A DNA stretch of 64,000 nucleotides from Ramazzottius varieornatus. Taxonomy: Eukaryota > Animalia > Tardigrada. The stretch's first letter is position 1, and every line of letters begins with the position of its first letter. The DNA lies in contig BDGG01000009.1 in assembly GCA_001949185.1 (NCBI GenBank), positions 361,624-425,623 of the forward strand. The letters are read 5' to 3'. The position numbers were made by a program, and so were the translations under genes. Below are positions 10,484 through 63,418 of this stretch, one piece after another. Below the pieces are notes generated by a model. That model saw only the letters and a list, made by a program, of their open reading frames with translations. It made no database searches and was not told where the DNA came from.

Positions 10484-13400
10484 ATGAGTAAAGTGGGGAA
10501 CGTCAAGCTGCTGGTCATCGGCGATGTTCATGGACACTTCAATCTTCTGGTCTCCAAGATCACCGCTCTCAACCAGAAAAATGGCCCTTTCGAGGTAAGC
10601 TGTATCATCTCGCTCACGGAGTTATAATCATCATCTTCCTCCTAACTCCAGGCAGTATTCTGTGTGGGAAGCTTCTTCGGAGACAACAACAGCGAATGGA
10701 GCGACTTGGAGAAATGCATAATACAAGGTACATAAAATAAATATATTTGTTCTTTTCCTTTCCATATTTCATTCGATGTGCTTCTTGCTTACGTGCGCTC
10801 GTTTTTTTCCACAGTTCCAGTACCGACGTACATACTCGGACCTATCTTTCCTGAGCACGCTAAATTCTTCAAGGACAAGAGCGGCGAAGATCTCGTTCCA
10901 AACGTAACTTACCTCGGTATGAAAATATCGAACACTCGATCTCAACCTTTTCAACCCGTTCCATTCACGTGATTGTCGTATTTTCGTACACAGGTCACGT
11001 GGTGGCTTGGCCACAGGCAAATTAAAATTGAGTACGGTTATTTAGGAAGGGGTTTTTAATCGAAGATCTCTCGAACCCACAAAAACTGCGGGTTTATGGG
11101 ATACATGGTCAGACTTTTCGACGTGGCTGTGAAATTTGGGGGTTAGCCAGTGATGCTTCGGGCTGAAATATCTTTCGTCCACATGGTACAAGCATTATTC
11201 GCGTACAAAGTACACATCTGGATCGATCTTCCGGGATTTTTTCCCCACGAAAACAGACGTTTTCAGTGTTCTGGAATTCCAAGTTTCCGTCCGAGAATTT
11301 TGGAAAAGGAAGATAGGAATATTAGGAATTCCTTTCATATTTTCCATTCCAAGAGGTTTGGCCTGGAATGCACAACCTTAGTACGAGGTAGGTCACCGTA
11401 GGTGGAACTGCCCGTTCTAAAAATCCCGCAGAGGTGAAAATCTTTGAGAATTCATTTCTCCAAAACTAATCATGTCATTTCGTGACAGTTGGTACTGTTC
11501 GAAAGCCCGAATTTTTCTCTACAACCTGAAGCTAAATCGTTGGATTCGGAATTTGAACCAAAACACCCCTTTCTAAAAAACCGTACTCAAATAGAAGTAC
11601 TCGTTTACATTTCTGTCTTTCATGCTAATATTAAATTGCCTTTTTTTCAGGTCGTCGAGGAATCTTCACTTTCACGTCCGGTTTGAAAGTAGCCTACCTT
11701 AGTGGAGCTGAATCCTCCGATCTGTCTGGTGACAAGTCGGAAATCACATTCACACAGCGTGATGTGGAAGAAGTGGTAACATTAGCTGGTGGAAACTCCT
11801 GTATCGGTTTCGATCTCCTCCTGACTAGCCAGTGGCCAGCCAATGTCGAATTGCATGGCGGAAATGAAACAGTAAAACTCCCGTCCTTTGCATGTCTTTG
11901 ATCCTTCTGTCGAGTTCATGCTGTACGCTCCTTTCAGACGTTCGACTCGGCAAAAGGAGGATCTGCCCTCATCGCTCAGCTGGCCGTCACACTGAAACCT
12001 CGCTACCACTTCTCCGCGATCGCCGACACCTTCTACGAACGACTGCCATACAGAAACCACCAGACCCTCGCTGAATCCGCCACTCACCCTTCCAGGTTCG
12101 TCGCTCTGGCCTCCGTGGGAAACGCCAAGAAAGGACGAGTAAGTCGGATCGCGGAGTGGCGCATGGGTCTGTTGATAATGGCTGGAAGCGTGCGCCATTT
12201 GGAGCAAACTCCACAAGATTGTTTTCCCAAGCCGGCGCACGTTTTGGTGATTTGTGCTGGAAGTGTGCGCTACTTAAGGAAACGATCTTGCCCAATTTGC
12301 AACTTTATTATCCGAACAGGTCAAACTTCCTGTTTTTTTTGCAGTACGTGTACGCTTTCAACATAGTCCCAATGTCCAAGATCTCCTTCCAAGAGCTGAG
12401 AAAGCAACCTGACCACTGCACGCCTTGTCCCTACGCCGAGAAGCCTCTCCTGACCAAGAAGGACAAGGTAGAGGACATTGTAGCGAACCAGTACTTTTAC
12501 GACATGGTCTCGGGTGATGGCCAGCGCAATGGCAAGCGTCAAGGCAATCAAGAGGATCACCGGAACAAAAAACCACGGGGAGACGGCCAACCGGAAGCTC
12601 CCTGCTGGTTTTGCCTCAGTTCGCCCGACGCCGAAAAGCACCTGGTCGTCAGTGTGGGCCTCCACTCCTACGTGGCCCTGGCCAAAGGTACGACGAGCAT
12701 GCCAGTACCGTTCTCCGGTAACTGCCGTAGACTTAATGTTAAATTCTTCATGAATGCAGCAATCGCGGGAAACCCCGGCGCCCTCCTTGTTTCCGCCCTT
12801 TTTCTACGAGTGTTTGTCAAGGCCATGCCCGGCATAAATCTAACTGGGATACTGGTAGAAAATGGGCAGAATTGCCTCAGCGGTTAAATAACTTTGCAGT
12901 GTTTGGCGTTTGTCTGCATCATAGTCCTTTTATTTTCAGGAGGGTTAACGCCAGAGCATGTGCTGATCATGCCCATCTTCCACTTGAGGTCGTACCCGGA
13001 AGTGGACGACGAGACAGCTGCCGAGATCGAACAGTACAAAGCAGCCTTGATCAAGTTCTTTTCGGAGCAGGGCAAGTCGACGGCTTTCTTTGAACGGAAC
13101 TTTAAGTCTAAGCATATGCAGCTGCAAGTCGTTCCTGTCCCTCAGACCGACCCAGAACGAATCAAGGATCTTTTTCTGCAACGAGCAGAGGAAAGCCAGC
13201 TGAAGCTCACGGAAATCCCCTCAAAATCCGACCTCAGACAAGTATCAGAAGCAGTTTCTATTCGATATCAGCGTCTGTTTTTGTAGTTCGCTTTATTGGT
13301 GTTGAATGCATTTTTACAGATTATCAAAGCCGGACAAACCTTCTTCTCGGTTGAACTGGACAACAACGATAAGCTGTTTTACAAGATTGACCAGAAAGGG

Positions 13401-15269: not shown

Positions 15270-16695
15270 CAGCCCTTCCCGTCCCGCTCTCCCGTATCCC
15301 CATTTCTGCAGATCTCCAGACCATACATAAAGTTGTACTTTATTTTCTTTACAAAGACCGCTATACTGCCCTTTTACAGTATATACGTTTCCCCTAACGC
15401 TTCTCGATAAAGTCGTCGCAGTGTTTGCTTGTATACACTGACTGCCGAGGTCTTGTCTGTCAATTCAACTCGCCAGAACCTGCAACACGCCCTTGCTTGT
15501 ACAAAGCGCAATTACAGTATGAGCAGTCATTTGCTATTTTTTTCGGTGAAAGTTCAATCGCTATAGTAATTTGGTGATGACGACTTTCGCGTTACTGCAC
15601 GGTGAACAGTGGATCCCCTAAAAAGTCTTGAACCATGGCGGAAGACGTCTACGATGCGTAGATAAGATCAATGCAGCTTGTACACCTTGAAGAAAGTTGA
15701 CTTGTCAGATGAACATTCTTTACCGTAAAAAACGTTAGATCGTAACAGTAGTTGGCGCCCTTTGACCGTTTGATCATGCATCTGCAGCAGGTCACGACAT
15801 GGACGCATGCGTCGGTTCGAGCAAACCCTCGACTAAACCCACCCGCTTCGCCGAATTATGGTCCAATGCGGAACAACCTGGAGGTTTCGACGTACAGGAA
15901 CACAGGTCGCCATGTCCATAATCTCAATCAGCCGACATTATTTAGGAAAATCAAGGTTCAGCAAAGTGGGTTTCATCTACTGTATACTGAAACAGAGCAC
16001 GCAATAGTTGCCCAAGTGATATCTGCTATCAGGTTTCGGCTCTGTGAGTTACGAGATGTTACTGTAGCTTAGGATGGCTCGATGTAATTTCTGGGTGACA
16101 GGATCTTGTTTTAATGAGCTATAAGAAACAGACTGGTAGAAAAATGGCATCGATACCGATTACACCCATTCTCCCTCGCAGACGAGCGCAGCTTGCTTCT
16201 GGTGAGCAACCAGATTGTTGTTTTATGACCATGTGATTATCCTCTTTATGAAAATAACGGCCGATACCGTTGGGTTGTAGCGTTGGATCGCGCGCGTTCC
16301 CGATCGGTTGACCGACTTGGAAGTCACAGTGATCCCTGTTCGCCTGATCCACTGGGCAACACCGGGCAAACTCCTGGAATTGTCAGCTTTCTCATGAACA
16401 GCGGCCAGCGATTGATCACTCGTGCCCAGTCTTCCAAGTACGTTATTGGGGGACCGGCAAACAAACCGCACAAGATCGGTACTACCACAAGTGGCGCACG
16501 CGTTCAGCCAATAGGAATGGACACCTGCGTCGCTTGAGATGACAATCTTGTGTGTTTCGCTTTCCGCTCTGCCGTATGGTTCAGGTTTCAACCACAGTTT
16601 GAGTTTTTCCGTGTGGAGAATATTGTGTTTTATAATTCGAGACATGGTTTATAACCAGGTCTCAATATAACTCAACGGAGTGTCTGGAGTCCCCG

Positions 16696-17335: not shown

Positions 17336-19777
17336 ATGGTGTTTCCCAAGGTCTTGTTTATCATGGCCTTGAGTTTCTACATGTATGGTAGAACTGAGGC
17401 TCAGAGTGAGGAAGCGACCATCCCGCGGCCGAGCTCATCGATAGCGCCTACAACGTTACAAACAGCCACAATTTCACCTCAGGGTAGCTCCGCCGATGCT
17501 TTCTTCCACGGTATCGACACAACGACAATCCCATCGGTCGGCAACCGTGAGCTAGCACTCAATCGGACCGCCAAGCTGGCAGATGACCACAGCGCCGCCG
17601 AGCAAGAGTCCGTCCGAACACAGGACAAGAGCCCACCGGCGGAAGGCAAATTTGATCCCGCCCGACTGCTCCAGCTCGCTTCCAAATAGTAAGTGTTCGG
17701 CCCAGGTTCTGAACGTTGGTTCCATACTACATCACTGTACGTGGCGTTGTTTTTCCTCTTCCAGTGGCATTGCTCGGTCCGCTGCTCTGCCCGCTGGTTT
17801 CACGCTAACGCCTCCACGCCCCAAATGGACCACCATCAAGAACAAGACTTTCGACCACGCCCAACCAGTCTTCTTCGACTCCTTGGTAACTTCAGTATCC
17901 ACCACCACCACGACCGCAGCTCCTACTTCTAGCACAACAGAAACACCGACTACGCCTACTCCTACCACAGATCCCACAACGACGGAACCTACAGAAACTA
18001 GTACTGTGAGTTTGACTGCTACTACTCCAGAAGAAACTACGGTTACTTCTGTCGGCACCACCCCCTCGACTACCACCACGGTTACTTCCTCTTCCCAAAC
18101 CACCACCATGCTCATCACCTCAACTACCACCACGGTTACTCCTTCCACCCAAAATACCACCATGCCCACCCTCGTCACGGCAGCCACCACCAAAGTCACA
18201 TTTCCAACAGAACGCGCCTTCATCTTCTCTGATCCGGATTTCGTCTTTGTGGAGAACGTTACTTTGTTCCCAGCACCTACCACCATAGCAGCCACAGCCA
18301 CTACTACAGTGGAAGCAACCACCACTGAAGTAACAGTCACGACCGATGTAGTCACCGACACACCAGCTACTACCCCGTTACCTGTCACCGAAGCAGCCCT
18401 AATGACCGATACAGCGGTGGTCCCAGTGAGGATCGTATCTAAAGCTGGGGACGAATTGGCGAAAGTACCAGCTAGCGAAAGTACGTCAGAATCGACGACG
18501 CCACCTGCCGAAACACCGAACACAACGTTAGCCGAAACCACCACTGAGGCTCCCGTCGAAACCACCACCTCCACCAGCGTAACTGCAGCAGTCTTCGAAA
18601 CGACGACTAAGTTGATGCCCGATTTTTCCAGTCAGTAGTGTACATGTTAGGAAATTCCTAAATTTGACAGAGATGAAATCTAGCAAAACTAAACTCGCCG
18701 AAATTACACTTCCATTTTTTTACGCAGAATTTCGACCGGGGATGGACTGTTCCGAGAGCGCCACCTGCGATGCCTTCATTCCCAACTCGTACTGCAAGAA
18801 GATGGATGGTGACTTTGGTATTTGTGCCTGTTTCCCTTCCTTGACACCAGTCAACACTTCCGACTTGACACGACCTTGCGGTGAGCGAACCGTCTGTACG
18901 GAAAACCCCTGTCGAGGCGACACCGATGCTTCAACCTGCACACCATTTCCTGATCGCTTCTTCCCAGACAACTTCGGACGTTACACCGCTCAGAAGAGCT
19001 TTGAATGCCGGTGCAACGAAGGATCGGTTGGCAACGCCCATTCTCCAGTCGTCGCTGGACTTTGTAAGTGGGGATGTTGGCAAAGGATTTTACTCACATT
19101 ATTGTTCCAAGCGGCGCAGTACTTCGGTGTTACTTACTGGTAGAATGCGCCACTTGGACAAACAACCAGGTCGAGTTTGATTGCTTCCTCGAGTGGCGCA
19201 CTGTGTCGGTGTTGTCGTTTGGAAGCGTGCGTCACTTGGGGAAACGATCTAGGTAAAATTCATTTGCTGAAGTCACAGTGGAATTTTGATCGTTATCTTT
19301 GTGTCGTTAATATCTATCGAACTGTCGTGGACCAAAGTTTACCATCGTCAAGCGGCGTGTTTTCTTCCAGGTTGCAGTGCTGGGCGGATGATGTGTAAAG
19401 ACATGAAGAACTGCTACGGTGTCGAAGATATGTGTGATGGTACTCCGCATTGCCAAGTAGGCATATACCGTCGCTCTCTGCAGTTTTATCAGGTATGAGT
19501 CTTTGATTGTGGGGTTCTACGGATTTGTTCGTAGGACTTGACGGATGAGCTATTTACGTTCTGTGGAAAGCGCGAGCGAACCCTCGCCCTTGCTCATTCA
19601 CGCACCATGGAAGACTCCACCGATCCCCTCTTCATGACCTCACTGCAATCTGTCCCGCATCCACGAGCCGTAATCCAGAGCCGAGCGGACGAAGGCCTTC
19701 TTGTAGGCTCTCCCTTCGGCATACCTGGTATGATCCGCGTACCATTCCGCAGCGCTGCTTGGGGAATGACTTACTGA
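17336..19777 (+). CDS. Secreted mucin-like protein with Cys-rich EGF/EB-like and LDL-receptor class A modules
   Basis: Signal peptide MVFPKVLFIMALSFYMYGRTEA, Thr-rich exon, Cys-rich EGF-like exon, spliced LDLa CSAGRMMCKDMKNCYGVEDMCDGTPHCQ|DLTDE. Confidence 0.8.
19069..19276. repeat. Family A palindrome x2 (intron)
   Basis: Arms 19108/19145 and 19190/19227, both with 25-nt spacers. Confidence 0.9.
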
Positions 19778-20383
19778 GATTTTAGCGCTAAAGTCCATAT
19801 CTGTCCGAACTCGATAGTCTATCTGTTTCATGGTTACTACAAAGTATGTTTTATCGTCCTAACTTAGCCCCTGTCAAGTATTTCTAGAAGAAAGCCGGAA
19901 GTGGTCTCCTACTTACGGTGAATGCTGTACGTTCATTGTATTCGATCCAGCTCATTGACTGAAACTGGCAAAAAGCACTCAGGATCCCGTGAAAGGGGTT
20001 GACGCTTGGCGTCGTGCACGAAAGAAGGAGTTGACACATTACGGAGAAGACTGAAGGAAAATCATAAAAGACTATGGTTATGAACCTTATCCTTCTTTTA
20101 CATTGATAAGTATTATCGTAACTTCCGGATCCAGCGGGTGGACCTCGGTCTCATTAGCTAATTCATAGGCGCCCCTGTGAACTGTAAACACCTCACGTCA
20201 GCGTGACGTTACTGATGATGTCCGTCATCAGAAATTTCTATTCTGGTGTTGTTTGAGTTTATCTCTGCAAGAGCACTTCGGAACTGGAGAATCTGTACCT
20301 TATAACGGACGAGAAGGGTGTGCACGCAGAGAAGTTTTGGCACCATGGACTGAAAGGAATCGCACAGTCGAGCAGGAATGACC

Positions 20384-21304
20384 ATGGACAAGCTGAATCT
20401 TATTTCCACTCTGTTCTTCATCCTAGCTGACATTTTTGCAGTGGCCAGCCTGATCTTGCCTGACTGGATCATCAGCGACATCGGTGGAGGTAAGAGCAGT
20501 TTCTGGTAAGTAGATAAATATGCTTAATCAGCCCTTTCTGCTGCAGGGAAGACACGAATTGGCTTGTTGGAAACATGCTTCACCATCTATGGGCGAGAGT
20601 CCACCTGCGAAGCTTCCGTTCTGCCAGCTGAATGGACCTTCAGCTTGATTCTTCTCGTTCTGGGCATCTTAACATCCACGATCACCTCCATGCTGTTTGT
20701 GACTTCCCAGTGGAAGCCTGGCTTGACTAATGTCGCTCGTTGGATCGGCTTTGCTGGAAGTAAGTCCAGATATTTCTGCCTTTCTCTACGAAAACGCTTT
20801 GTCAAGGACTTGCCCAGCACGGCCTTGACACATCGTTTTCGTAGAAAATGGGCAAAATTTATGTATTTGGACAGATCGTTTTTTCAAGTGGCGCACGCTG
20901 TCAACATAAAAGACTGAAAACGCGCGCCACTTGCGAGTACAGTCTCACTGATTTTCCCAAGCGGCGCACGCTTTCGGTCAATAATAATGAGAACGTACGC
21001 CGCTTGAGATACGATACGTCGAAATCATTTGTCGACGTCCCGACTTATTCTCGCGACTAGTCCAAACAGATTAGATGCCCTTACCAGTTTGTATGTCAAT
21101 GTATGTTTTGCAGTGATATTCTTCTGCTTGGTGGCAGTGACATTCCCCCTGGGCTTCTCCATGGAGGCGATCGGAGGCGACCCATTTCAACTGCCCAACA
21201 GTTTCCAAGTGGGCATGTCCTACATACTTTTCGTTTTAGCTTTGTGGGTGACTGTAGTTTCTGAACTTCTGGCAGGCAAAGTGTGCCTTCCACACATTCG
21301 TTGA
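20384..21304 (+). CDS. MOSMO: Modulator of Smoothened (C16orf52-like tetraspan protein), 3 exons
   Basis: MDKLNLIS..LADIFAVASL..PDWI, ARWIGFAG, FPLGF..IGGDPFQLPN..VGMSYILFVL, LAGKVCLP match the MOSMO family as I recall it. Confidence 0.9.
20773..21041. repeat. Family B (20773-20858) plus Family A x2 (MOSMO intron)
   Basis: B is a near-perfect hairpin CTACGAAAACG..TGTCAAGG..CCTTGACA..CGTTTTCGTAG; A arms 20885/20922 and 20958/20995, 25-nt spacers. Confidence 0.92.
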
Positions 21305-21654
21305 TCTCTTTCTCCGTTTGAAATCTCTCAGTTTGAATCGCTACTCTTTCTCACTCTTTCCGTTCACAAATCGTCCTAGTGCTGAGAATCTTCTCTTTTA
21401 ATTACAGCGCAAACAAGAATAAATATAACGGAGGACAAAATAAATATGTTTCTTCCCCTGTGAAATCTGAAGACGGCAGAAAAAAAATCCGAAAAGCACC
21501 CACATACTCTGATAAAAAAGCTCTGTCAGCGCGCACAACTAAACTGCCATCGAAGATACAGGGATTGAATAATTTACAGGAGAAGACAACTCATCAAGTA
21601 CCAATAAAGACATTTGCGGACAGGCTATCTTTGATGTGGTAAGAGAAGCTGCTG

Positions 21655-24600
21655 TTATTTTTTCTTGGTGAATCGTCCTTCCGAGGCAAAGACATCGGCC
21701 ATGCGGTTGAGTGCGCTGCCTGCTTTGAACCATTCAATTTGCTGGTCGTTAAAAGAATGGTTCAACTGAATAGTCTCCTTGCTGCCATCCTTGTGTTTTA
21801 ATACACATGTCACCGGCTGCAAAAACAACGATGATCAAAACTCCACCAAACCTACCGAGTCAAGCCCGACGGAGTTATTTTGAACGTCGGCAAAGGAATT
21901 CAACCAGACCGTTTTCCAAGTGGAGCCCTCATCTAGTTACAATACTAAAGTGCGCCACTTGACAGCGATCTGAGTTGCATTCTGGGCGTATGTTCCTTCT
22001 GCCATATTTCCACGCGAATACCGGTCAATCTAGCGCATGCCTTGATAGATACTCCGCAGAGAAATGGCAAAAATTAACTGAAACCTTGAATGTGAGTTCG
22101 GCAGACATGACATGGCTGTTCTGCCAAGTGCCGCACATTCCCAGCGTTATTGGCCGGAAGAGTGCGGCACTCAGACCGATCTTGTCGAGTCTGAATGTTT
22201 CCCATATGGCGCACGATTCCAGTATTATTGGCTGCCAGCGTGCGCCACTCAGAATAATTATCTTGTCCAGTTTGTTTGCCGAGCCCCATATAATTTCCCC
22301 ACGACAATTACGGAATATCGGATCAGCCTCATGACCAGGCAAGATCCGGTCAGTGCGACGACAGGTTTACCTTGTTAGGGGCCAATTCTGCCAGTCCCAA
22401 AAGCGAGACCGTATCATCGGGTTGGACTTTATCGTAGTCGGCAGGATCGTTGAACGTTAGAGGCAACATTCCTTGCTTCTTCAAATTGGTTTCTGCGAAA
22501 GAGAACACAGTCATTATTACTGCGTCAGGACCGCCCAACCGTGCAAGAAGCCAGATTTGGCGTACCGTGGATACGGGCAAAGCTCTTGACGATGATGGCT
22601 CGTCCACCGAGATGTCGCGGTTCGAGAGCTGCGTGTTCTCGCGAGCTGCCTTCACCGTAGTTGTCATCACCGATCACGACCCATGGTAGTCCCTTGGCTT
22701 TGTACTGACGCGCCACATCCGGTACAGCTTCGTACTTGCCCGTCAGACGATTCTTCAGCTTGTTGGCTTCACCATTCTCGTAGTTGATGGCCCTAAACAA
22801 GACATGCACGCTCTTTCATACAGCCAACAGTCACTTGACTTGTACAAAGAGTCACAAAGCTGAAGGGTTTACCCGATGAACATGTTGTTGGAAATGTTGT
22901 CGAGATGGCCTCGGTATTTCAACCACGGTCCAGCGGCACTAATGTGATCCGTCGTACACTTGCCTTTGATCTGCAAAACACAATACAGCATCCGTAATCA
23001 TTTCTGTCATGGGACGCCGGCAAATGAAGTGAAACATGATCGTTTTCCAAGGTGGCGCACTTTCTCATTGGTACTGCGTGGAACTGAGCGCCACTAGAAA
23101 GCGGTCTTGTTTGAAACAATCGTATTGTTTTCTCTCAGATTTCCTCGGCGTTGAACGGCATTTCAAAAGACAAAGGGTAACATTAGCTGCTGGCTTTTCT
23201 TACCTTCATCAGTACGGGCATATCTTCCAAATCTTTACCATCCCATCGGTCGAAGGGTTCCAGCAATTGCAAGCGCTGACTGGCCGGATCGACATCAACA
23301 CGGAGGTCGCGTCGTTGGTCTTGCTTCGGTGGCTCTTGGTAGGTATCTTCGCCGGGATCAAAGCCTCGATCGGGCAGTTCGCGACCAGTCGGTGGGTCCA
23401 GGACGAACTTCTCACCATTCGCCCCTGTTAGTGGGTCCGTCAGGGGATTGAAGTCTAGCCGTCCACCTAGCACTAGAGCTGTGACGATCTCTGGCGATGT
23501 CACAAAGGCATGCGTTCCTGGACTGCAAAAGGAAGGCCAGTCTCAACACTCGACACATTCGAGCGCCCACCGGCATCCAAGGTGAACCTTGCCGTTGCTT
23601 GCTCATCGGTGTATGCAGGTGCGTGAAAGACATACCTCGAATCATTTCGACCAAGTTACATAGCCCGAAGATTCGGGCAACTACGTGCATACACGTGGAC
23701 CTTGGTGATAGCCCTTACTCGTGTATGCAGATTCACGAAGTTAAGACTTACTTGGCATCATTTCGGCCGGTGAAGTTTCGGTTGTACGAATTGACAATGG
23801 TATTCTTTTCGCCCTTCTTGATGTCCTTCCTGTTCCACTGACCGATGCAAGGTCCACAAGCGTTGGCCAAGACCAGACCACCGATGTCGTGGAGAGACTG
23901 GGCCAATCCGTCACGCGTAATGGTAGCACGGACCTGTTCCGAGCCCGGTGTGATTGTGAACTTGGACTTGGCTTTGATGCCGTGCTTCAAAGCTTGGCGA
24001 GCAATGCTAGCTGATCGTTCCATGTCTTCGTAGCTGCTGTTGGTACAGCTGCCAATCAAGCCAACCTACCGAGGCAACTCCTTGAAATGGAGGAACTCAT
24101 CTCATGACACCTGCATACAGATGCACCACATCCCAGCATGGGGTCGCTGTATGCAGGTTGGTAACCGGCTTGAAAAGGAAAACTCGAGCAAATGATCTTA
24201 CCTTGATCTCCATGGGCCATCCATTCTCTTTGGCGCGTTTCGCCAGCTGAGACACGGGTGTCATCAAGTCAGGTGTGTAGGGTCCGTTGATTAGAGGTTC
24301 CAGCTCGCTCAAGTTGATTTCCAGCAGCTGGTCATACTGACAGCCTTCTTCCGGTGTCAGCAGCTGTTCGCGGTACTCCTCAGCGGCGTCGCCAATGTCT
24401 TTGCGGCCGGTGGCGTTAAGGTAGCGGCGCATGCGGTCGTTGTAGGGGAAGATGGAGGTGGTGGCCCCAATCTCGGCACCCATGTTACAGATGGTGCCCA
24501 TGCCGGTGCAGGAGATGGACTCGGTTCCCGGACCGTGGTATTCCACAATGGCACCTGTTCCACCCTTGACGGTCAGCTCCCCAGCTACCTTCAGGATCAC

Positions 24601-35189: not shown

Positions 35190-35309
35190 GTCTGGCCTTG
35201 GGGCCTATGCGCTTTTTGCTAAAGATACCCTGCAATACGCAGTGTTTCCGTCTTGACCCGTGGCCGATAAAAGTCCCTTCAACGAGTTTCTGACCGACTT
35301 TTTGAGAAA

Positions 35310-35425
35310 TCGGCAAACGAATTTCAGCCCAATCGTTCTCAAGTGGTGCATGCGTTCACTGTAACTGACCAACAGCGTGCGCCACTTGGGAAAATGATCT
35401 GGTTGAATTTGTTTGCTGCCGTCCC
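35310..35425. repeat. Family A palindrome (3' of the chitin-binding gene)
   Basis: Arms 35340/35377, 25-nt spacer; right flank ends GCCGTCCC. Confidence 0.9.
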
Positions 35426-41429: not shown

Positions 41430-41734
41430 ATTTGTGGCTTCCATGTCGAGAAGTAATTCTTTCTGAAATTCGCTTCCCAAATAAGTTTAGCGTTTTTATG
41501 GCCTTGTAAAAATTCCAGTCTTATCTTGTCAACACAATCCGTTAGAAACAATCCCTTCCGTCACTCTTCAGTTTTCGAAAATACTCTTGTGATTTTTATC
41601 CGCATGTTTCATTTAATTTTTATTTTGGCTAGCGTTCACGGGCTTTGGTTTTTACTGTTGCTGTACAGATGAAGGAGAAGACAGTTTTTTTCTACGAACG
41701 ATGCAGACTCAATCGCGGCAGAAGAGCCGAACAC

Positions 41735-41810
41735 AATCGTTATCTCAAGTGGCGCAATTTTACATCGTTGCCGGCTGGAAGTGTGCGCCACTTGGGAAAA
41801 CGATCAGGTT
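41735..41810. repeat. Family A palindrome (between convergent 3' ends)
   Basis: Arms 41746/41783, 25-nt spacer. Confidence 0.9.
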
Positions 41811-41957
41811 CAAGTCATTTGTTGTTGTATGGAGCTTCTTGGATGGTGTTATCGTTTCAACTGTGGGTTGTTCTGTAGTCTAGTGCAAAGTCGCTCATCA
41901 ACCCGCATTACAGAGTTTCTCGATCCCTCCGCGTGGAGAAATAAGTGGGCTGTAGCT

Positions 41958-50078: not shown

Positions 50079-53000
50079 TCAGGAAGGGCTGTCCTTGTTC
50101 TGCTCTAACTCCGGTGGCGGCTGAAGGTCCTTGGCCGCTAGCTCGATCAGCATCCTGGCGGCCTCTGAGTCGGGAGCCACCACCTTCTTGCCCTTCTCCA
50201 GCCAGAGGTCTTGCTGAGCATGGATGGACTTGGTGTTGTTGATGACAGACCCGTCGGGTGTGCCGTAGTTGGCTGAGGTGGAGTAGGGATCATAGCCTAG
50301 GCGTTGAAGCATGGGTGCCAGGGTGGCCATATCGTTGAGGACGTCCTGCGGGATACTGCCCACCCATTTGCCCAGAGCGTCAACGTTGACTGGCTTGATG
50401 ACTTGGTCCGACGAACGTTCCACACTACGAAAGAAGACCAACCGTTATTGAACAAACATTCGCATACGAAAAACCTCACAAACGCGGCCTTCGGATTATC
50501 ATCATTCATTTTTGCGTAGACAATACCAACCGTGGGAGAATATTGTGCGCAACAGTTACTTCTGCCCTTTTTCTACGATGTAACCGTTAACTGTCACGGC
50601 CGTGCTCGGCACAGACTTGACAGGCATCACCGTAGAAAGAGGCCAGAATGAGTCGTCCCACACTGGCTGCTGAATTATCCAACGGGGACGTCAACTGAAG
50701 TAAATAATTTCTGCTCAAAGGGTGATTGACTTATGGGGACAGTGTGTACTCTAGGACTAAGTTTTGACGAAACATGCAGAGGGAGAAGGAAGACGCAGTT
50801 ACTTACTTGGACAGTGCAACACCTCCGGGTTTGCCCACCATGTCTTCGTGATGAAGCATGACATCGTCCCAAGGCAATGCCAGGAAGGTGGAAATGCGTT
50901 GTAGCCAGACTTTGGGATGAAGGACCAATTGCTCGTAGTAGACCAGCATGCATCGATCAGGCCCCACTTGCCGACACTGCGCAAACATCAGCTCCATGGC
51001 TGAATTCCACTTCTCCATGCATTCCCTACAAGAGCCGGATAAGATCACATGGAGCATGAGGCTCACTATTCTAAAGGAAAATACTGCTGATACTGGTACC
51101 GATAACTGTCCAACTTGAAGCCGGTAATGGTGATCTTTCGGGAAATGATGGAGTGGACGGTGGCGCGACCGTCGCGAACCATAAAGAGAAACTTGGCGTT
51201 AGGGAAGAGCTCCGACAAGTAGGCAGCACTCTTCATGGTGAAGGGGTCCTTGTTGCAGAAGCGCTCGGCTGGATCTCCGTGACGCACAATAACCTACCGA
51301 CGCAAACCCAAATCAACCCAACATTTTTATTTTAATATAGTATCATGTGACTTTATATGGAAGCTCAGCGAATAATCTCGACAAGACCATTTTTTTCAAA
51401 TGGCGCACGACTGCAGCCAGTAACTCTGACAACGTGCACCACTGCGAACGACAAACTCGACAAGATTGTTCTTTCAAGTGGTGCACGCATCGGGTCAGTA
51501 ACACAGTCAAAGTGCGCCACTTCGAATGGCGAATTTTTAGAGCTTGCTTGACTAGGTCCCATACTTTCTTCATAGTCTTTCCCTTTACTCAGAATTTTTC
51601 CCTTCGTTCCAGACTTTGATTTATGAGAATACGATTCTGTATCAGTGTCACCGCGCCATCTCGCCTTCACGTATTTTCTTCGATTGCATGCCGACAATTG
51701 AAAGTTCATCACGTCCGGTATGGCAACTGTATCGCACAGCAGGACAGGGTAAAGCTTTCGTTGAATACCGTCTCCTGGCTCTTGGTTTATTGAACGCGAT
51801 AAGGAACACATGCAATATTTTATAGCGCAGCATGTATTAATGGCTTTTCTTGCGGGTGTTAAGTGGCTTTACGGGAAGCACAACCGATGGCATAAAGCAC
51901 CCATAAAGTGATGAGAATCGATCATCTACGCCAAGAGAGGGGAATATCCCATCATCCCTCGACTTATTGTCGTAAGCATCACTATTATCCGTGTTTAACA
52001 AGGCCTAAAACGCAACAGTAGCGCCATGAATCAATAGGCAGCTCTTACATCTTCATCTTATTACGTTTTTCGTCCATCCCGCTACACTTCACTTCACCCT
52101 TCCACAACTGTCAAGCTTTGTGAATTGTGACGGGACATACATGCACAAGAAACCCTTCGGATGAGTTCGATGGGTTATTATTATATTACACGAGTTATGA
52201 GCTTGGTGTCAACATGGCTCCATGCATTACTGCACGAACGCCAACTTGGTTTGGCTTCTTTGATGTCTTCCCACATGACAGTTTGCGACAACATCGGCCA
52301 TGTTTGCTCAAGCAACATCTCTTTCTTGTATCAATGTATTTCCACCAACGTCCGCGGCATTGTTGCTGTAAGGCGGACATTCACCGGTCTCCTCTTTCGC
52401 ACAAGTTTCGCCCATACTACCGGATTGAAAAGTAACTTTGCCCTTTTCCTATGAGATACCAAGGTCATGCCTAGCACGGACTTGGCAGGATTGTACGTAG
52501 AAAAAGGGCAAAACTGAACACCTGTCAAGGGCGTGCTCGGCACAACCTTGACAAGCAGTTTCGTTGAAAACGAACGAGCCTATCTCAAAATCTTTCCGCG
52601 GCTGGAAAACACATAGGAGAGAAGAATAGACATATAAAGTGAATTTTATTGTGAAGTATACTGGTACCTCTAGAATGAAAGCAGCAAAGGCCGGGTTGAT
52701 CACATCGTCCGTGACGCCGGCACTGTGAAGACGGCGCATTTCCTTGTCGGACTTGAGCCACATTTGGCGCAGGGCTAGAAGACGGGGAATGACGCGCGTT
52801 TCCTCCCCGCAACGGACCGCGGGATGAGCGTCCAGCATGGCCCGCATCAACGTTGTGCCTGCAAGCAGAAGCAAGTAAATGACATATGCTAATCCAATTA
52901 GCGGCTCTTTCATCAAATGAAATAGATCTTTGATGGCACCAGAGCAGAAAAGACAACTCACTTCATTCGTGCTGGGCATAAAAGGGTCTTCAACCATTCG

Positions 53001-53616
53001 CTCAGCACCAAAACCCTGCTCTACGTCTTGTGGTACACATTATTCCCAAAAAAGGTCTGACCAGCAGCCAAGAGCCAGCACTTTAGGCCATGGGTCGCGC
53101 AGGCATGAAACACTGCTGACCAGCGGCTATTACATCACTGATAAACATCCCCACGTACATATTAGTAACATCACACATAATCCTCACATCACACCAACCT
53201 CACACACTCGATAAAGTGGCGCAGCCCACGGGTTTAATAACTGGTCATAACGCGCCACCACACTTCATTCAGTTTTCATCCAGATAATTTGTTCTTTTCA
53301 AAAAGTTTGCGTCCGAGCGCTCGTTCGACAGTTCGATACAAAAACGGCTCGACTATTTTCTGGAGAGCGGAAGACGGGAAGGTGAATGAAGGTACTTACC
53401 GCTGCGGGGCATGCCTCCTACGAAGATGAGCGGTATATTCTGATCGTAAGAGTAGGTCTGCTTCGTGATCTTGTCCTGCACAAATCCCCGCCGGACTAGC
53501 GTATTCGAGGCACATTGGAGCGGTGTGATGAAAGCCGTCAGGAGAGCAATGAGGAGGATCAAGATGAGGATCAGCAGAACACGTTTGGCCAGCCATCCGC
53601 GCATTACTGCCGTCAT
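50079..53616 (-). CDS. TPST: Protein-tyrosine sulfotransferase, multi-exon
   Basis: Type II TM segment, [11 protein letters not shown]|[55 protein letters not shown]. Confidence 0.97.
50560..50648. repeat. Family B fold-back (TPST intron)
   Basis: TTCTGCCCTTTTTCTACG..TGTCACGGCCGTGCTCGGCACAGACTTGACA..CGTAGAAAGAGGCCAGAA. Confidence 0.88.
51358..51561. repeat. Family A palindrome x2 (TPST intron)
   Basis: Arms 51397/51434 and 51475/51512, 25-nt spacers. Confidence 0.9.
52437..52570. repeat. Family B fold-back plus a second inner core (TPST intron)
   Basis: TTTGCCCTTTTCCTA..CGTAGAAAAAGGGCAAA then TGTCAAGGGCGTGCTCGGCACAACCTTGACA. Confidence 0.88.
53213..53261. repeat. Family A core (TPST intron)
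   Basis: AAAGTGGCGCAG-N25-ACGCGCCACCAC. Confidence 0.7.
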
Positions 53617-54721: not shown

Positions 54722-55888
54722 ATGGACAGCTCAGGCTTCGGCGGTTCCATCTTGATGCGATCGGTTGCAATGACGGAAATCACCCAATTGGCAGAACAGG
54801 ATGCGCAACATCCGGAGCATTCTGTGGACGTCAACCCGAAGGAAATGACTGGTGAGAGCAGATATTTTATCAAAACCAGCTCTAATTTCGCTCCAGGCCA
54901 AGGTTAAAGAGTGGTCCTAGTCTGCTTTCGACTGTCCATCCGTTAAATTGCTCATGGCACTGTACGCGTTTTGGTAGCAGGTGACGCTCGGGATAGCAGT
55001 TCGAAGGAAGACACGACGCATCCCTTCGCCAGTCGTTTGTTGGCCGTCCTGCCCAACGCCATGTGTCCATACCTGCCGGGCGACCGTACTCGCACAGGAT
55101 ACTACGGACTGCGCACACCCATCTGCTTCTACACCGAGACTGGCGAGCAAGTCACATACGACCCGGCTTTTGTTCAGCCCTCCTCTTCGTCGAGCTCCAA
55201 CACTCCGCCTAATCCTGGCACAGCGCCCTCTCCGTCCGCGCTCAAGACCACCATAGCAGCCAGCAAAAGCTTCGTTGGCTCCTTGGCTTCCAACGACAGT
55301 AGCGTCAACAGTAGCGGCGGAAGGGTAAGCCTCGCCAAATTTAGAAGCTTAGCAAACAAATTCGAACAGATCTTTCTCCAAAGTGGCGCACGCACTCAGA
55401 CAGTAACACTGAACATGTGCGCCACTGCGAAATGCAATCAAATTCACCAGCCTTGTTTTTCCAAGTGGCGCATAAATCCTGCCGATATCGCTACTAAGGT
55501 GCGCCACCTGGGAAAACGATCTGCCTAAGTTTATATGCCGAGCTTTCATTTGAACCTCAGCTTCTGAATAGCAAGTTTTACAACCTTAACCTGAATAGCC
55601 TTCTCTGGAGAGTAGTTTTACAACCGTTTTAACAACTGGTGGTTTCAGGATCCGAGTATCTGGCCGATTGTTACGCAAAGTCAGCCACAGTTCTGGCCGA
55701 ACCGTGGAGGACAAAATGGTCGACGGACGGACAATGATGGGAACGGCGGCGGGCGTGGTGGTGGCCGTGGAAGATATCATCAGCGAGGTGGCGCCGGTCG
55801 GCTTCGACGTGGTGGGGCCAGCAACCACAATAACGGCGGCGCAGCGCGTCAAAATCAGCAACCACCACAAGCAACTGCCACTCAGTGA
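54722..55888 (+). CDS. Orphan ~237-aa protein with a Ser-rich middle and an RGG/RG-rich C-terminus (exons 54722-54851, 54981-55324, 55649-55888)
   Basis: Two GT-AG introns join in frame; last exon reads ..NRGGQNGRR..GGGRGGGRGRYHQRGGAGRLRRGG..QNQQPPQATATQ*. Confidence 0.7.
55345..55548. repeat. Family A palindrome x2 (intron of the RGG gene)
   Basis: Arms 55380/55417 and 55462/55499, 25-nt spacers. Confidence 0.9.
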
Positions 55889-56692: not shown

Positions 56693-58577
56693 ATGAACTG
56701 GTGGAGATCGCTGTCATGGACAAGACTGCCTCGTAAACTGAGTGAAGCCGTAGCAAGTGAGGGTTCCAAAACTGGTTTATTTCCTCCGACCACCAACAAG
56801 CAACACAAGCTCTGGCTGATCCTTATTATTCCTTTGAGCGTCCTCCTCATCTTTCAAATTTGTCGCCTCATTTACCAAAATCCCACCTTACTCCCTCAGT
56901 CCTCTACCACCACGACTCGCAAAGTCTTTCAGCAAAATGCTCAAACACTTCAGACACCCAAGACCGAAGGCCGGTAAGTTCCGCGTAGTGATCGACATTC
57001 GTCATGCGAAATCGAATCACTCATATCGGACATCAACAAAGGACTGGAAAACAATCGTTGTCCAAGTGGCGCACACTTTGACGAAATAAAAATGGGAAAG
57101 TGCGCCACTTGGGATAACGATTCTGTTCAGTTCATTTATACCGACGGTCCCTATTCTGTGTCATAGTTTCTTTCAATAGGTCACTCATCCACCGTCTTCG
57201 ATGGCGCGTTCGCAACACTTTCCAGCGTTCTTTCCCCCCGCCTACAGCGACACAAGTCTCTGAAGGCCTCTTACTGCACAACATGGAGCAGATTACCTGC
57301 GCGGGACTGGGTAACTTTCTGTTTGCAGTGGCATCGGTGATTGGAGTCGCCCGAAGCACCTATCGTCAGCCCGGGCTCTTCCAAGGTATGGGAACTGCCC
57401 GACAGGGGCTATTTCCCCACCTGAACTTCTACGCCGTCCCCAAAGCACAAAGTCTGACGGACGACAAGCTGAAGAATGTGATCATTGATACGGGCGTGGC
57501 CGGCATTCATAATCTGGATATCTACAAGCAGATTATGCAAAGCCGGAAGAACGATGACGGTCTTGTCGATTTCGTCATCATTTCTGGTTCGTTGCCATTT
57601 TCCCCTTCTAGGGAATGGATCTCTGTCCCAGAAGACTCCCAACGTGCCGCAAAATCTTTCAACTTAGACGCTGTGTGGATTCTGCCCTTTTCCCACGGAA
57701 ATGCCGGTCAAGTTTGTACTGAGTACGGCTTGATCAATATTGCGTAGGAAAGGGCAAAATCCATTTTGCACCCAACATGTATTCCCATGACTTGTCCCAA
57801 TTCTGAACTTGAGATCACATTGTTACTTTGGAGTAAAAAAGTTTTGTGTTTGCGGGAAAATGTCGGTCGAATTTAACAAGAAATTTCCGACAAAGCAGTT
57901 TTTATGCATGGTGTTTGTTTTGTTTGACAGGTTACATGCAGTCGTGGCGGTACCTCGAAGCGTTCCACGACGAGGTTCGCCAACGCCTACAGTTCGCTCC
58001 ATCCATCTACGAGAGCGCCATTCAAGCTTTGGTCCTCAACACACCCAAATATATTTTAAAGAACTCCAGCCGCCCTGACGGTCAACCTTACACTCTGGTG
58101 GGCATTCACGTGCGGCGAGGCGACATGGTCAACCACGGTTACGGCTACCAGCCAGCATCGGAAGCCTACCTGCTGGCCTGCGTCTCCTACTTCACTCGGT
58201 ACTACCCCAACGTTCTCTTTGTCGTTGCCAGTAACGATATATCTTACTGCCCGAAGCTTTTTCAAGGCTCTTTTGTCTTCATCGCAACGGTGAACCCACC
58301 GGAAGTAGACATGGCTCTGCTGACACTGATGGACCACCTCATCCTTTCTGTGGGTACTTTTGGGTGGTGGAGCGCTTACCTTAAAGACGCCATAGAGATT
58401 TGGTTCTATAAAACGTGGTACAAGTCCGGATCAGGGGTAGAGAACGAATATGTTTCACGCGATTACTTTCTACCGACTTGGAACGTCTCCGACTATAAAC
58501 AGCTGATGCTTCTTCGTCGTTGGACTACTGTAGGATGTTTGTTAACCTTGTTCGTCTGTTACACCATTGTCCAGTGA
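56693..58577 (+). CDS. Galactoside 2-alpha-L-fucosyltransferase (GT11 family), multi-exon; 3' end approximate
   Basis: Type II TM segment, AGLGNFLF, GYMQSWRY, VGIHVRRGD, DMALL..DHLILSVGTFGWWSAYL, DYFLPTW. Confidence 0.9.
57050..57125. repeat. Family A palindrome (GT11 intron)
   Basis: Perfect arms CAAGTGGCGCAC 57063 / GTGCGCCACTTG 57100, 25-nt spacer. Confidence 0.92.
57680..57759. repeat. Family B fold-back (GT11 intron)
   Basis: TTCTGCCCTTTTCCCACG..GTCAAG..CTTGAT..CGTAGGAAAGGGCAAAA. Confidence 0.82.
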
Positions 58578-58921
58578 ACCTTGTCTTTCGAATCCTCAAG
58601 TGATGCATTTCGCTTCCCAGACGAAACGGGCCCAGTAAAACTAATAACGCCCTGTAAAGCAGTGACGTCACTTCCGGTTGACTGGTAAGTTATTGATAGC
58701 GCTGGGCGCGGCCATGCACTTCTCTTTCCTTGAAATGCGTCGGCCACTTTGGCTATCGTGGTATGAATTCCCATCAGCTTCAACCTTTATTACTGGGAAG
58801 TTCTAAACAAGTAGCACCAAGCACTGGGGCTCTTTACCAAACGCTGCTGTGCAAAAGGGTAACGAAGGTATCGCACATTCGATTCTACCTGCGCATCACG
58901 ATCGAATCATCAATTGGGGTT

Positions 58922-59007
58922 TGGGACATCGGCAAATGAATTCACCAGGTCATTTTTCCGAGCGGCGCACGCTCTCGAATACTGAAAATGAAAACGTACG
59001 CCGCTGA
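58922..59007. repeat. Family A palindrome (5' part of the GT32 locus)
   Basis: TGGGACATCGGCAAATGAATTCACC.. terminus; arms 58959/58996, 25-nt spacer. Confidence 0.88.
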
Positions 59008-59021
59008 AGATAGCACTCTGC

Positions 59022-60268
59022 GTGGAATCGCTTTTCAAAGTTGGACGTCCAACTTCTAATTTACACACCGTACATTATTACGGGTATATGTCCATGATGT
59101 CGCAGTTCGGGCTCCTGGGGTTGGGGAACATGGAAGAGATCGAAGATACCAACATAACATCAGAGGACTTGCTTCGGACGGGCACGCCCGCCAAAGCTGA
59201 TTTTCTGATCGTTCATTACGTCCGGCTGTTAACTGATGGAACTCAGGGCGCACCTTTGAGCTTCGTCGACTGTCTGGGACTCTATTCAGTGTTTCTCCTA
59301 CTCAAGCCCGATCGCATTCTGCTCCATGCCAACTCGAAAGACGTCTGAACCTTAGAGAACAGTGAAGCGCTGCTAAACAAGACACTGAATTGGTCCATCG
59401 TTCAAACCATCCTGGCGCCCTTGCAACGCACCATCAACGGCAAGACCATCAGCTACATCGCGCACGAAGCCGATATCCGTAAGTTGCGCGCCCTGGAAGA
59501 ATACGGAGGGATAGTATTGGACTTTGACGTGGTAATCCTCAATGGTAGCACAGTGCGGGCCTTGTGGACCATTACGCCCTGTTTCATCTGCTGGGAACCA
59601 GCGCGCAACTCGGCCAATTCCGGCTTCCTTGGCTGTCGCCAGAAAAACGCCACCTATCCGCGGTCGATTCTGAAACAGTACGAAGTGGCTTATAACCCCA
59701 ACTGTTGGTCCTGTAACAGCGGATTCGTGCCATGGAACATCTGGAACGACAACAAAGGTGAGACTAAAATGGCAGTCCGGGTCAACAGAGCCGACCAGAT
59801 CGTTTCCCCAAGTGACCCACGCTTTCAGCTGAAAACACTGGAAATTTACGCGACTTGAGAAAACGATCTTGACGAAGTGAAGAAGTCTCCAGCCTGAAAC
59901 ACTGGTAACATGCGTCTCTGGAAAAAATGATCTGGTGGACGTCGTTTGTCGAACTCCCAACTGAATACTGTATTCCTGTCCTGCAGACCACACAGTTTCT
60001 TTGTCTATTTCAGATATAGCCGTTTTGGCCGATAATGTTTGCAACAACCCGGACTTTTACCAGCGAGACAAGATCAATGAGCAGCGCGGCAAGTACGGTT
60101 GGAACTTGGAGAGACAAGCCGGCCTATCACTCTTTCCTTCACGACAAGGATTTCAACCGGACCAGCGCCAACCACTTGAACTCAGCTTTGGGGGGTGTCT
60201 TCCGCTGGCTCCTGACGGGCGCTCCCCCAGACCTGATGGGGCAACAGATTCCCCCTGTTCTTGACTGA
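59022..60268 (+). pseudogene. GT32-family (alpha-1,4-glycosyltransferase, DXD motif) gene with an in-frame TGA and a +1 frameshift
   Basis: IVHYV..CLGLYSV..LKPDRILLH, AHEADIRKLRALEEYGGIVLDFDV; TGA at 59346-59348 inside a continuous frame; apparent extra T at 60106-60107. Confidence 0.75.
59795..59959. repeat. Family A palindrome plus a degenerate second unit (GT32 intron)
   Basis: Arms 59809/59846, 25-nt spacer, GATCGTTT/AAAACGATC flanks. Confidence 0.8.
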
Positions 60269-60521: not shown

Positions 60522-63418
60522 CTACACTCTTTTCTGATGTTTCTTCCCCGTTTTCTTGGCTGGTTTGGGTGGAGCGTGTGGATCGATGAGGCGGCCTGAG
60601 CGGTTCTTCACATCGACGGAGTCGTAGAACGTCACACCGGTTTTCTTGAGCCGTTGACGTCGTTCCACCTTTCGCTTCTGCTTGCCTGTCAGCGTCCGTT
60701 CAGCTTTCTGCTGCTCGTCCTTCTCGAACCACCTCTTCTTGGCCGTGGCCACATCGTCCACATCGGGATCAGCAACATCCACCTCTTCTTTCTCTTCTCT
60801 TACCTGCACGCCGTTCTCCAGACTCGTTGAAGGCTCATTGTCTAACGTTGCTTCGTTCTCCTCCACCACCACTTCTTCGGCTGTCAGTTCCTCCTCAACC
60901 ACTTCTTCTTCCTCCTCTTTCTCTTCTTCCTCACCCACTTGGCCTATCTTCTCATCAGCGGCGTCAAACTGGTTGGTGTGCTTCAAATCTTTGAAACTTT
61001 GCTTGATCTCTACCGTCGCCTTCTTTTCGACGGATTCTCCTGCAAACAAAGCCAATCGGCGTTCAGAGATGAATTATTCAGTGCTATCAAACGGAGAACG
61101 CGACAAGCTCGACAAGATCGTTCTCGACAAGTGGTGCATATTTCCCGTCAACAATACTGCAAAAGTGAGCCACTTGGGAAAACAATCCTGTCGACTTTTT
61201 CGAGGTGCGCACAATTACGACGTCACTGGCCGGATGCGTGCGCCACTTGACACAAGAACCTTTTCGAGATCGTTTGCTAAACTCCCTATTACCGAAACAT
61301 ACCTTGGCTGGTGCTGAGCTGCTGGGTTTCCGGTGGCTTGACAAAGTAAGGTATCTTTCCGCGTTGGAAGTCATTCAAAATCATCTTGGCCACCGTTTGC
61401 AAGTCGGCTTCGCCTTTCTTGAAGAGTCGACCCGCCTTGCGGGCAATCTGCTCCAAGAAGTGCTCCGAGTCGGTCCACTCTTCCACTCCGTACGTCTTCT
61501 TGATATAGTCCAGCTTGACTCGTTCCAGCAAGGCGGGAATATAATCCATGGCCGACTTGAGGTGCTCCACGCGGATGATGCCTTTCAAGACCGTATCTTC
61601 GTCCGTGTTGCCCGTTGGATAGACGACACCTGGACAGTCGATCAGGTAGATGCGATTCATCAGCGTAATGTACTGCCAAACCTGCAATTCAATCACGGGC
61701 ATGATAAATTGATACGACGATAGTTCTCGGTGAGATCTGACTGCGCCGCAGTCGTGGGGACTTATTGGAAGCTGGGCGACAAAACGTACGAAATCGTCAC
61801 ATCAAGTAGCGCACATATCTATTGTTAGTGACTGAACAGGTGCGCCACTCTTGCACGTGTCAACAGCTTCCAACTTAGTAGAAGATGGTTTGATTTTCGC
61901 CCATTTTCACGAAATAACTACTGAAGTCGCGCTCGGTACAAACCTCTGTTGAGTGTTGATCTATGCCGAGCACGGCCCGGACAGACAACCCGTAGACAAG
62001 TGGTCAAATAAGTCTTCGCGACTCTTCTGATACTCCGCTTACCTTGGTTTCACCAGGAATCGGTGCGACCTTGACCACTTTCTTGGCTTTGAGCGTGTTG
62101 ATGATGGAGCTTTTGCCGACGTTGGGGTAGCCGATCAGCCCGACCGATATCTGCTTCTTGTCGATGTGCAGCTTTGCGAACTGCCGCAAAATGTTGATCA
62201 GAGGCCCCTTGCCAAAGGAGTTGGTGATAGATGCGTGGAAGGCAAGGGTGGGATACTCCTGACTAAGAATGGCCACCCATTTCTTCGTCACCCACGTCGG
62301 TACTAAATCGCACTTGTTCAGGATGAAGATTAAGTGCTTGAAGGGCTTTTCTTCCTTCAGAAACTTTTCAATGGTCGGACTGCGCGTCCCCATTGGATCA
62401 CGAGCGTCCAAGACTTGTAAAAGCACGTCGGACGAATCCACCACCTGAAAAAAACCCAAACATTTACAGATAACCACACCGGGAGGTTACTTTAATTAAA
62501 CGGCGTACCTTGTACAACTCGTTCCAGATTCTCTTTGACTGTCCCGCAAACATGATCCATTCCTTAGCCTCATCACGCTCCCCGCCGTCATCCACCACCA
62601 AGTCTCGATCTTTCTCCACATCGTAACTGTCTGTCGTTGTTGAGGCATGCGAAACGAAGTCCTAAAGAGAAACGACCACCACTGTACGAATATACAAACC
62701 GGCAGACCTACTTCCTTCGCGACTTGGCCGACGGCCCAAAGGTGACATGCGACACAGAGCACGCCAAGGCTCGCCATCAGCGTCAGATTCTGGAACATCG
62801 CTTGATTATTGATTACCTTCAAATCGTCAAACTTGACATTGGGCTTCTTCCGCTGCGCTTTCGGTCCAAACGTTGTCTCGAACTTTTCCACGTCCAGCAA
62901 ATGGGCACGCTGGTATTTTGCTCGTTCATTCAGTAATGTGACAGGCAATTTAGTGGGTCGCATCACGACGCGGTAGGGGTCTTTTACAGCTTTGCCTGTA
63001 ACACACAGAAGTACAAAAGGGATAATTTGCCCGTCTTCCTCGCAAACTGTCCTTCCACTAAGCAAGAAGCATGGTTCGAAACTTTGTGCTAACGTCCGAG
63101 GAACAAACCTAGCTCGTCTTGGAAAGTCTGGAGTGCGCTCTGGCCGACCACACGCGTGTTTCCAAACCATTTCCGGTTGGGCTCAACTCGACTCTGAGTA
63201 CCACTTTTGTGCCAGCTCTGGAACGGTGCTGGCTTGACAATGATTCCCTTAGCGTTGCGCTGAGGCTTGGAGTTTTTGTACATCAATAGCCGCTTGATGG
63301 TAGCACGATCCCGCTGCCCAGCATGTTCACGAGGACGATCGGGATTGAGACTGTGGCCACCCATCTGGAAGCCTTCTTTCCTCGTCGTTCTGATATCGCG
63401 CTGACTCTTTCGACCCAT
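60522..63418 (-). CDS. GNL2: Nucleolar GTP-binding protein 2 (Nog2/NGP-1), multi-exon
   Basis: [80 protein letters not shown]. Confidence 0.97.
61100..61286. repeat. Family A palindrome x2 (GNL2 intron)
   Basis: Arms 61128/61165 and 61201/61238, 25-nt spacers. Confidence 0.88.
61795..62008. repeat. Family A plus Family B (GNL2 intron)
   Basis: A arms 61803/61840 (25 nt); B 61894-62008 with two degenerate cores. Confidence 0.82.

Follow-up and report, generated by a model that had tools for sequence, protein, structure and literature searches.

The DNA analysed here (the window; 64,000 nucleotides (nt), positions 361,624 to 425,623 of contig BDGG01000009.1) comes from the tardigrade Ramazzottius varieornatus and carries animal genes for aconitase, Mob1/phocein, a CwfJ-like protein, a family-11 glycosyltransferase and NGP1. 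Dispersed through it are copies of a short repeat, referred to here as family A. An earlier note, made from the letters of the window, listed 37 units of this repeat, each consisting of two inverted 12-nt arms around a spacer of mostly 25 nt (N25), and proposed that they are selected sites for a dimeric protein or hairpins of fixed geometry. We describe herein the longer palindrome to which these units belong, and the evidence that a pair of short boxes inside it has decayed more slowly than the rest of the element.

Structure and abundance of the element

When printed out, all 37 listed left arms proved real, and with the best right arm taken for each unit the spacer tally was exactly as claimed: 25 nt in 30 units, 24 nt in four, and 26, 21 and 15 nt in one each. 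Arm mismatches averaged 1.59 per arm across these units, the best right arm being chosen. A search for 12-N25-12 without mismatches gave a single place in the window (57063-57111) and nothing in 100 shuffles; when as many as two mismatches were allowed in each arm, 24 pairs appeared, and the spacer was 25 nt long in 21 of them. A profile built from the listed units and run against the window with nhmmer recovered them and added one full-length copy (16439-16586).

These units are not the free-standing sites that they had been taken for, but the inner 49 bp of a palindrome of about 125 bp. In the 154-column consensus of the profile, the mirror rule i + j = 154 holds over columns 15-139, so that the consensus is a perfect palindrome over this length. 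It runs from a terminus (TGGGAC...) through an outer stem, a flank made of GATCG and a T-run, the 12-nt arm and the tip into the mirror image of these parts, and thus has terminal inverted repeats (TGGGAC.../...GTCCCA). Between the points at which conservation falls off, the element measures about 125 bp and has no coding capacity. The flanks earlier reported for the arms, GATCGTTTTC and GAAAACGATC, are real, but they belong to this longer palindrome, whose ends had been missed. Similarly, the "sequence-variable spacer" has indeed diverged in sequence, but it is actually the tip of a hairpin, with a stem of 8-9 bp that includes several G.T pairs and a loop of 7 nt. Because the loop is the sole asymmetric part, units appear to occur in both orientations. 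For one well-preserved full-length copy (45850-45975) a single hairpin is predicted, with a free energy of -60.1 kcal/mol (z = -7.4). The conserved arm is also real, but its protected part is 9 rather than 12 nt long. This box, AGTGGCGCA, forms an inverted pair 27 bp apart, or 36 bp from centre to centre. Modules occur singly or form arrays of two or three, in which the period is 64-85 bp (111 bp in one pair) and neighbours have a single flank as their common linker.

Genome counts refer to the whole assembly (55,842,812 bases in 200 contigs). Both 12-nt arms are exact at N25 in 371 places, against none for a reversed control. The exact 9-nt box occurs 12,324 times and is spread over many contigs (control, 291), and exact box pairs number 2,115, of which 1,686 are at N27. 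In copies detected without using the boxes, the probability that a box is exact is about 0.39-0.45, which together with the 12,324 exact boxes gives roughly 15,000 modules, or about 1.5 Mb. Many dispersed copies lie at unrelated loci, in introns of different genes. Their density is very uneven, with 38 copies in the 64 kb of the window, whereas two 100-kb segments of contig C1 (1.0-1.1 Mb and 5.0-5.1 Mb) have 10 and 4. A scan of the window against Rfam gave no match, and a literature search found no paper describing the element or its motif. Searched for in metagenomes, the box pair matched 32 contigs, none of which (0/32) carried the family by profile; these were chance matches. The box also equals a 9-mer of initiator tRNA as given in papers, but a tRNA scan was empty and the likeness was dropped as chance.

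Protection of the box pair and decay of the hairpin

Since a search with the arms would itself favor well-kept arms, conservation was read from copies detected by profiles that left the arms out and covered just the outer stem and flank. In these copies the arms are 89-91 % identical to the consensus, compared with 77 % for the flank opposite the one used for detection and 70 % for the outer stem. The arms are thus better kept than flanks and spacer, as had been claimed, and detection bias is ruled out as the reason. Box divergence is about 9-10 %, against 20-28 % for the rest of the element (28 % for the spacer). A mixture of subfamilies was examined as a possible cause and rejected, because splitting the copies into as many as six subfamilies narrows the gap only slightly: measured against leave-one-out consensuses within subfamilies, identity is 89 % for the arms and 92 % for the box, 79-80 % for the flank, 72-76 % for the outer stem, 72 % for the tip stem and 75 % for the loop.

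The protection ends abruptly at its edges. Within the box, A-T pairs are kept as well as G-C pairs (92-97 %), whereas G-C pairs immediately beyond it stand at 74-81 %, the level of the flank; genome-wide, the share of exact 9-nt pairs that are also exact over 12 nt (371/1,686) corresponds to a conservation of 0.78 per edge site. Such edges, with A-T pairs kept inside and G-C pairs unprotected outside, argue for recognition of sequence rather than for stem stability or base composition. Base composition had been considered separately and was ruled out, given that the G+C-rich termini (60-89 %) and the G-C pairs adjacent to the box are unprotected. Nor is the box a free motif used elsewhere: it was found 92 times inside elements and 8 times outside, where 2.7 were expected, and several of the 8 are themselves degenerate copies.

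The distance between the boxes is moderately protected as well. Genome-wide, the 27-nt spacing is kept in 1,686 of 2,115 exact pairs (79.7 %), and most of the altered spacings among the first hundred pairs listed are one-base changes. A flank segment of similar length (25 nt, from the box to a TTTGCC anchor) has kept its length in 1,146 of 2,140 cases (53.6 %). In aligned copies there are 0.006 indel events per nt in spacer and arms, against 0.018-0.028 in flanks and outer stem together and 0.018-0.021 in the flanks alone. Spacer length is therefore conserved about three times better than that of the flank segment, with an indel rate below the flank's, which bears out the earlier note on this point.

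The hairpin itself has fared differently. If pairing were maintained, each half of a copy should match its own partner better than a partner drawn from another copy, yet pairing with own and shuffled partners is 86.7 versus 86.4 % in the arms, 73.2 versus 73.1 % in the inner flank and 69.0 versus 67.4 % in the tip stem. Only the outer stem shows an excess (68.9 versus 63.8 %), and this is due to two deep subfamilies with mirrored differences. Compensated pairs are visible at 20958, 22125 and 58959, at a frequency equal to chance. Within host genes that could be assigned with confidence, there is no sense-strand G.U bias (134 G.U against 146 A.C, p = 0.51), and the loop shows no orientation bias relative to the host gene (21 versus 28). 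Left and right halves of a copy have thus changed independently of each other and their pairing is not being maintained; selection for a hairpin or cruciform of fixed geometry is not supported.

The copies of family A are old and dispersed, and there are no young ones. Pairwise identity among about 100 copies has a mean of 0.63 and a maximum of 0.833, compared with a maximum of 0.80 after columns were shuffled. The identities fit this column-shuffled star model except for the two deep subfamilies, which differ by linked, partly mirror-compensated changes in the outer stem. When two copies of the window were used as genome queries, their best matches were 75-86 % identical, and the full-length ones only 75-79 %. 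The 28 best genome-wide matches of one query carried 16 % of its rare states, against 12.7 % in unselected copies.

Host introns and the copies of the window

Introns were established from contigs of four RNA-like runs, belonging to four studies, over 19050-25049. Spliced contigs define ten GT..AG introns in this interval, and all its family-A units are intronic except the pair at 19108 and 19190, where RNA depth is close to zero. The four confirmed host introns are given in Table 1. Within them, 11-89 nt of other intron sequence, variable in length, separate the element from the splice site on each side, and without the element 56-134 nt are left, which is near the minimal intron size. The introns without family A measure 57-136 nt, plus one of 229 nt. 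The two longest of these, which hold no family-A unit to explain their extra length, are confirmed aconitase introns (23523-23751, 229 nt; 24066-24201, 136 nt).

We also used an intron model that scores splice motifs together with the open frames and the codon usage of the sequence to either side, and that recovers the confirmed introns. Of 88 clusters, 49 % were called as lying in an exon-flanked intron (72 % when the window alone is considered); for random non-coding segments the figure was 7-12 %. Published shares of the genome are 22 % intron and 43 % intergenic (PMC5531438); compared with the former, the model calls indicate that the family is over-represented in introns. As introns are short unless they hold such elements, however, this enrichment is partly circular.

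Some evidence bears on the age of a host intron. An aconitase fragment of a relative (identity 72 %), obtained with the exon alone as query, begins at precisely the boundary where three modules lie here, and this hints that the aconitase intron is older. Aconitase fragments of relatives break at differing places, as seen with a single-exon query and no joined spliced model. A further aconitase fragment, P0105 from an ENA assembly, matches the exon of the window at 96 % identity and ceases to align after ...LLEIN, a point that falls within an exon here; either a close relative with another intron or a break in the assembly may be the cause.

Table 1. Family-A copies in the window. Numbers in brackets after a copy are left arms; the strand of the element is not assigned, and signs refer to host genes.
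Positions	Copy	Host intron	Basis or remark
12155-12299	two modules	12139-12344 (+ gene, CwfJ-like), filled by the modules; intron model score 28.5; GTAAGT...CAG	nhmmer
16439-16586	full-length copy, absent from the earlier list		89 bits
19069-19283	two modules (19108, 19190)		RNA depth near zero
20861-21053	two modules (20885, 20958)	20760-21113 (+ gene)	RNA-confirmed intron
21873-22292	three modules	21817-22370 (- gene, aconitase)	RNA-confirmed intron
23009-23114	one copy	22971-23203 (-)	RNA-confirmed intron
24692-24925	three modules (24716, 24792, 24874)	24655-25002 (-)	RNA-confirmed intron
35300-35431	full-length copy (35340)	intron model score only 7	96 bits
37406-37621	two modules	37341-37641 (-)	predicted intron
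38016-38199	two modules (38047 with 15-nt spacer, 38119)		profile
38861-38973	one copy (38895)		profile
41713-41835	one copy (41746)		highest profile score, 109 bits; genome query
42557-42699	one copy (42608)		profile
43914-44011	one copy (43965)		profile
45254-45384	one copy (45298)	45186-45513 (-)	predicted intron
45837-45980	full-length copy (45884), both termini present		single hairpin fold, -60.1 kcal/mol, z = -7.4
46412-46603	two modules (46460 with 26-nt spacer, 46545)		profile
48133-48259	one copy (48162)		second genome query
51348-51573	two modules (51397, 51475)		profile
53213-53261	degenerate unit (53213)		2 and 5 arm mismatches; under profile threshold
55335-55554	two modules (55380, 55462)		profile
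57019-57158	one copy (57063)		sole window copy with both 12-nt arms exact
58916-59042	one copy (58959)		profile
59771-59970	one copy (59809) and a half copy		profile
61096-61295	two modules (61128, 61201)	61040-61302 (-)	predicted intron
61758-61849	one copy (61803)		profile

Several other features were observed along the way. One RNA contig spans 21114-21816 and with it both the plus-strand gene, which has GT..AG introns up to 21113, and the minus-strand aconitase gene, whose introns read CT..AC from 21817; the 3' ends of these convergent genes seem to be shared or to overlap. Low-depth contigs of two runs join family-A copies that lie kilobases apart (19146-24890) without GT..AG ends, and the joins most likely stem from assembly across the repeat and not from RNA processing. 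The intron at 20760-21113 holds, besides its two family-A modules, a second and unrelated palindrome, family B (20762-20868), with 52-nt arms that are 75 % complementary and 3 nt apart. At the left end of the window (1-2800) there is a tandem array with periods of 12, 36 and 60 nt, a G+C content of 0.59, a strong GC skew and open frames at 2-1378 and 1363-2754; this is probably repetitive coding sequence that the start of the window truncates. Runs of 50 N stand at 1309-1358 and 7674-7723. Elsewhere in the genome, the Harbinger/PIF transposase domain PF13359 has 129 matches (for example C3:355948-356421 and C14:1034282-1034755), several of which have identical scores and unbroken frames of 427 amino acids, suggesting a recently active Harbinger family.

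Origin of the box pair and comparison with known systems

On balance, we favor the view that family A is an ancient palindromic MITE (miniature inverted-repeat transposable element) whose box pairs form a bipartite recognition site and decay more slowly than their carrier. A MITE origin, which had also been suggested earlier, fits an element that is short, non-coding and dispersed and has terminal inverted repeats. The unit would then be the central module of a non-coding palindromic mobile element of about 125 bp, a MITE of the fold-back type, which would have multiplied in the distant past to about 15,000 units, singly or in arrays of two or three modules. Most copies would now lie in short introns, to be transcribed and then spliced out. 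After insertion, the halves of each copy would decay independently with the exception of the 9-bp box pair, a putative bipartite site for a sequence-specific and probably dimeric protein, the likeliest candidate being the factor that formerly mobilised it. Of the selected dimeric protein-binding site proposed in the earlier note, two parts stand, namely half-sites conserved with sharp edges and a retained spacing, while the half-site itself appears to be 9 nt long.

Such protection might have acted only on the way to new copies. If boxes and spacing were needed for mobilisation alone and have no host function today, new copies would have come only from parents with intact boxes, and the boxes would look young while the flanks carried the history of their lineages. 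The two deep subfamilies, with linked and partly mirrored outer-stem changes, would be source lineages that evolved; the decay of the boxes is homogeneous and independent of side, as for neutral decay from one date, and the genome does hold many copies of a Harbinger-type transposase. A neutral relic of this kind nevertheless seems unlikely, if by no means far-fetched, since parents and offspring should then be about 82 % identical over their full length, where the best seen are 75-79 %, and private changes should be held in common, where rare states stand at the background level (16 versus 12.7 %). Moreover, pairwise identities follow the star model apart from the two subfamilies, and splitting by subfamily leaves the gap nearly as wide. 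A star-like genealogy without surviving close relatives suggests that the difference in rate most likely arose in place and not through a filter at birth; weak purifying selection in place is the more likely of the two. A mutational cold spot would likewise act in place, the box being less mutable through its sequence context or a stable stem, and the slowdown is indeed uniform across copies and nearly binomial. We consider it improbable, because the G+C-rich terminus (60-89 %) and the G-C pairs flanking the box are unprotected and divergence in the loop does not exceed that in the stems; besides, a cold spot for substitutions leaves the retained spacer length unexplained.

Two further explanations start from the introns. 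The RNA hairpin could keep the splice sites of an enlarged intron as close as they are in a minimal intron of 57-80 nt, in line with the intronic position of the elements, the 56-134 nt that remain without them and the strong folding of the copies. There is, however, no covariation, G.U excess or orientation bias, and the G-C pairs beside the box are unprotected while the A-T pairs inside it are protected, so that this idea, too, has little in its favor as a likelihood. Finally, family A might be an introner that created its host introns, as the high intronic copy number and the intron at 12139-12344, which is almost wholly element, would allow. Yet element ends and splice sites lie 11-89 nt apart, at variable distances, orientation is random, young copies are lacking, and the aconitase fragment with 72 % identity hints that the three-module intron is older; we regard this origin as very improbable.

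Several points weigh against the favored reading. The fine statistics come from about 100 copies taken from 350 kb, 29 of which were picked by similarity to one query. The flank segment with which spacer length was compared ends in a shorter anchor (6 nt) and is rich in homopolymers, and arrays replace some flanks. Many selection models predict separate classes of "kept" and "abandoned" copies; no sign of these is seen here, as the number of mismatches in one box of a copy is independent of that in the other and follows a nearly binomial distribution. As for the MITE itself, no clear target-site duplication was found in the A/T-rich flanks, where the best excess of direct repeats over the control is 0.08-0.135 (a perfect 4-bp direct repeat flanks three copies), and no autonomous partner was found, the transposase ends not having been compared with those of family A. 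Box protection could be a legacy of selection at the level of the element, or a local mutational cold spot.

We raise only tentatively, and would not ourselves expect to see upheld in full, the wider possibility that about 15,000 inverted AGTGGCGCA pairs are held by weak purifying selection and make up a lineage-specific, genome-wide network of cis-elements, candidate sites for a dimeric protein. The factor could be, for example, of an architectural or insulator type, or coupled to transcription or splicing. If so, a single mini-transposon would have wired thousands of identical paired putative binding sites into tardigrade genes, and a testable transposon-born regulatory or architectural network would exist beyond the usual model organisms. 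Should the pairs be no more than a relic of transposition, family A is a routine new repeat family. Even as a relic, it accounts for much of the intron-length variation in a very compact animal genome, its roughly 1.5 Mb comparing with an intron span of 12.4 Mb (PMC5531438).

Among known systems, family A resembles introner elements (Micromonas, Aureococcus, fungi and some aquatic animals) in that one repeat family makes up much of the intron sequence of a compact genome; however, it lies inside introns that have splice sites of their own, in either orientation, is old, and has ends that do not coincide with those of the introns. Bacterial REP/BIME sequences are also dispersed imperfect palindromes with a short conserved core, single or in small arrays, and have a dedicated protein, but they differ in domain of life, size and genomic niche, and the likeness is one of analogy only. 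Similar to it in form are the PAL-type palindromic or fold-back MITEs listed for Caenorhabditis elegans, which occur in compact animal genomes and are likewise short, non-coding, dispersed in high copy number and often intronic, the whole element being one inverted repeat. Family A differs from these in being best conserved at an internal box pair and not at its termini, and in having no target-site duplication or autonomous partner assigned. MITEs can also give rise to hairpin RNAs, as in the microRNA precursors derived from MADE1, and a transcribed palindromic MITE such as family A would similarly yield a long RNA hairpin; family A, however, has no Rfam match, strand bias or covariation. The box bears a partial likeness, which we take as a lead only, to AGGTGGCGC, a part of the CTCF motif. 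Waves of transcription-factor or CTCF sites carried by transposons, e.g., by SINE B2 in rodents, offer a parallel, in that one repeat family seeds thousands of motifs that decay more slowly than their carrier, with the difference that the putative sites of family A would come as inverted pairs at a fixed spacing.

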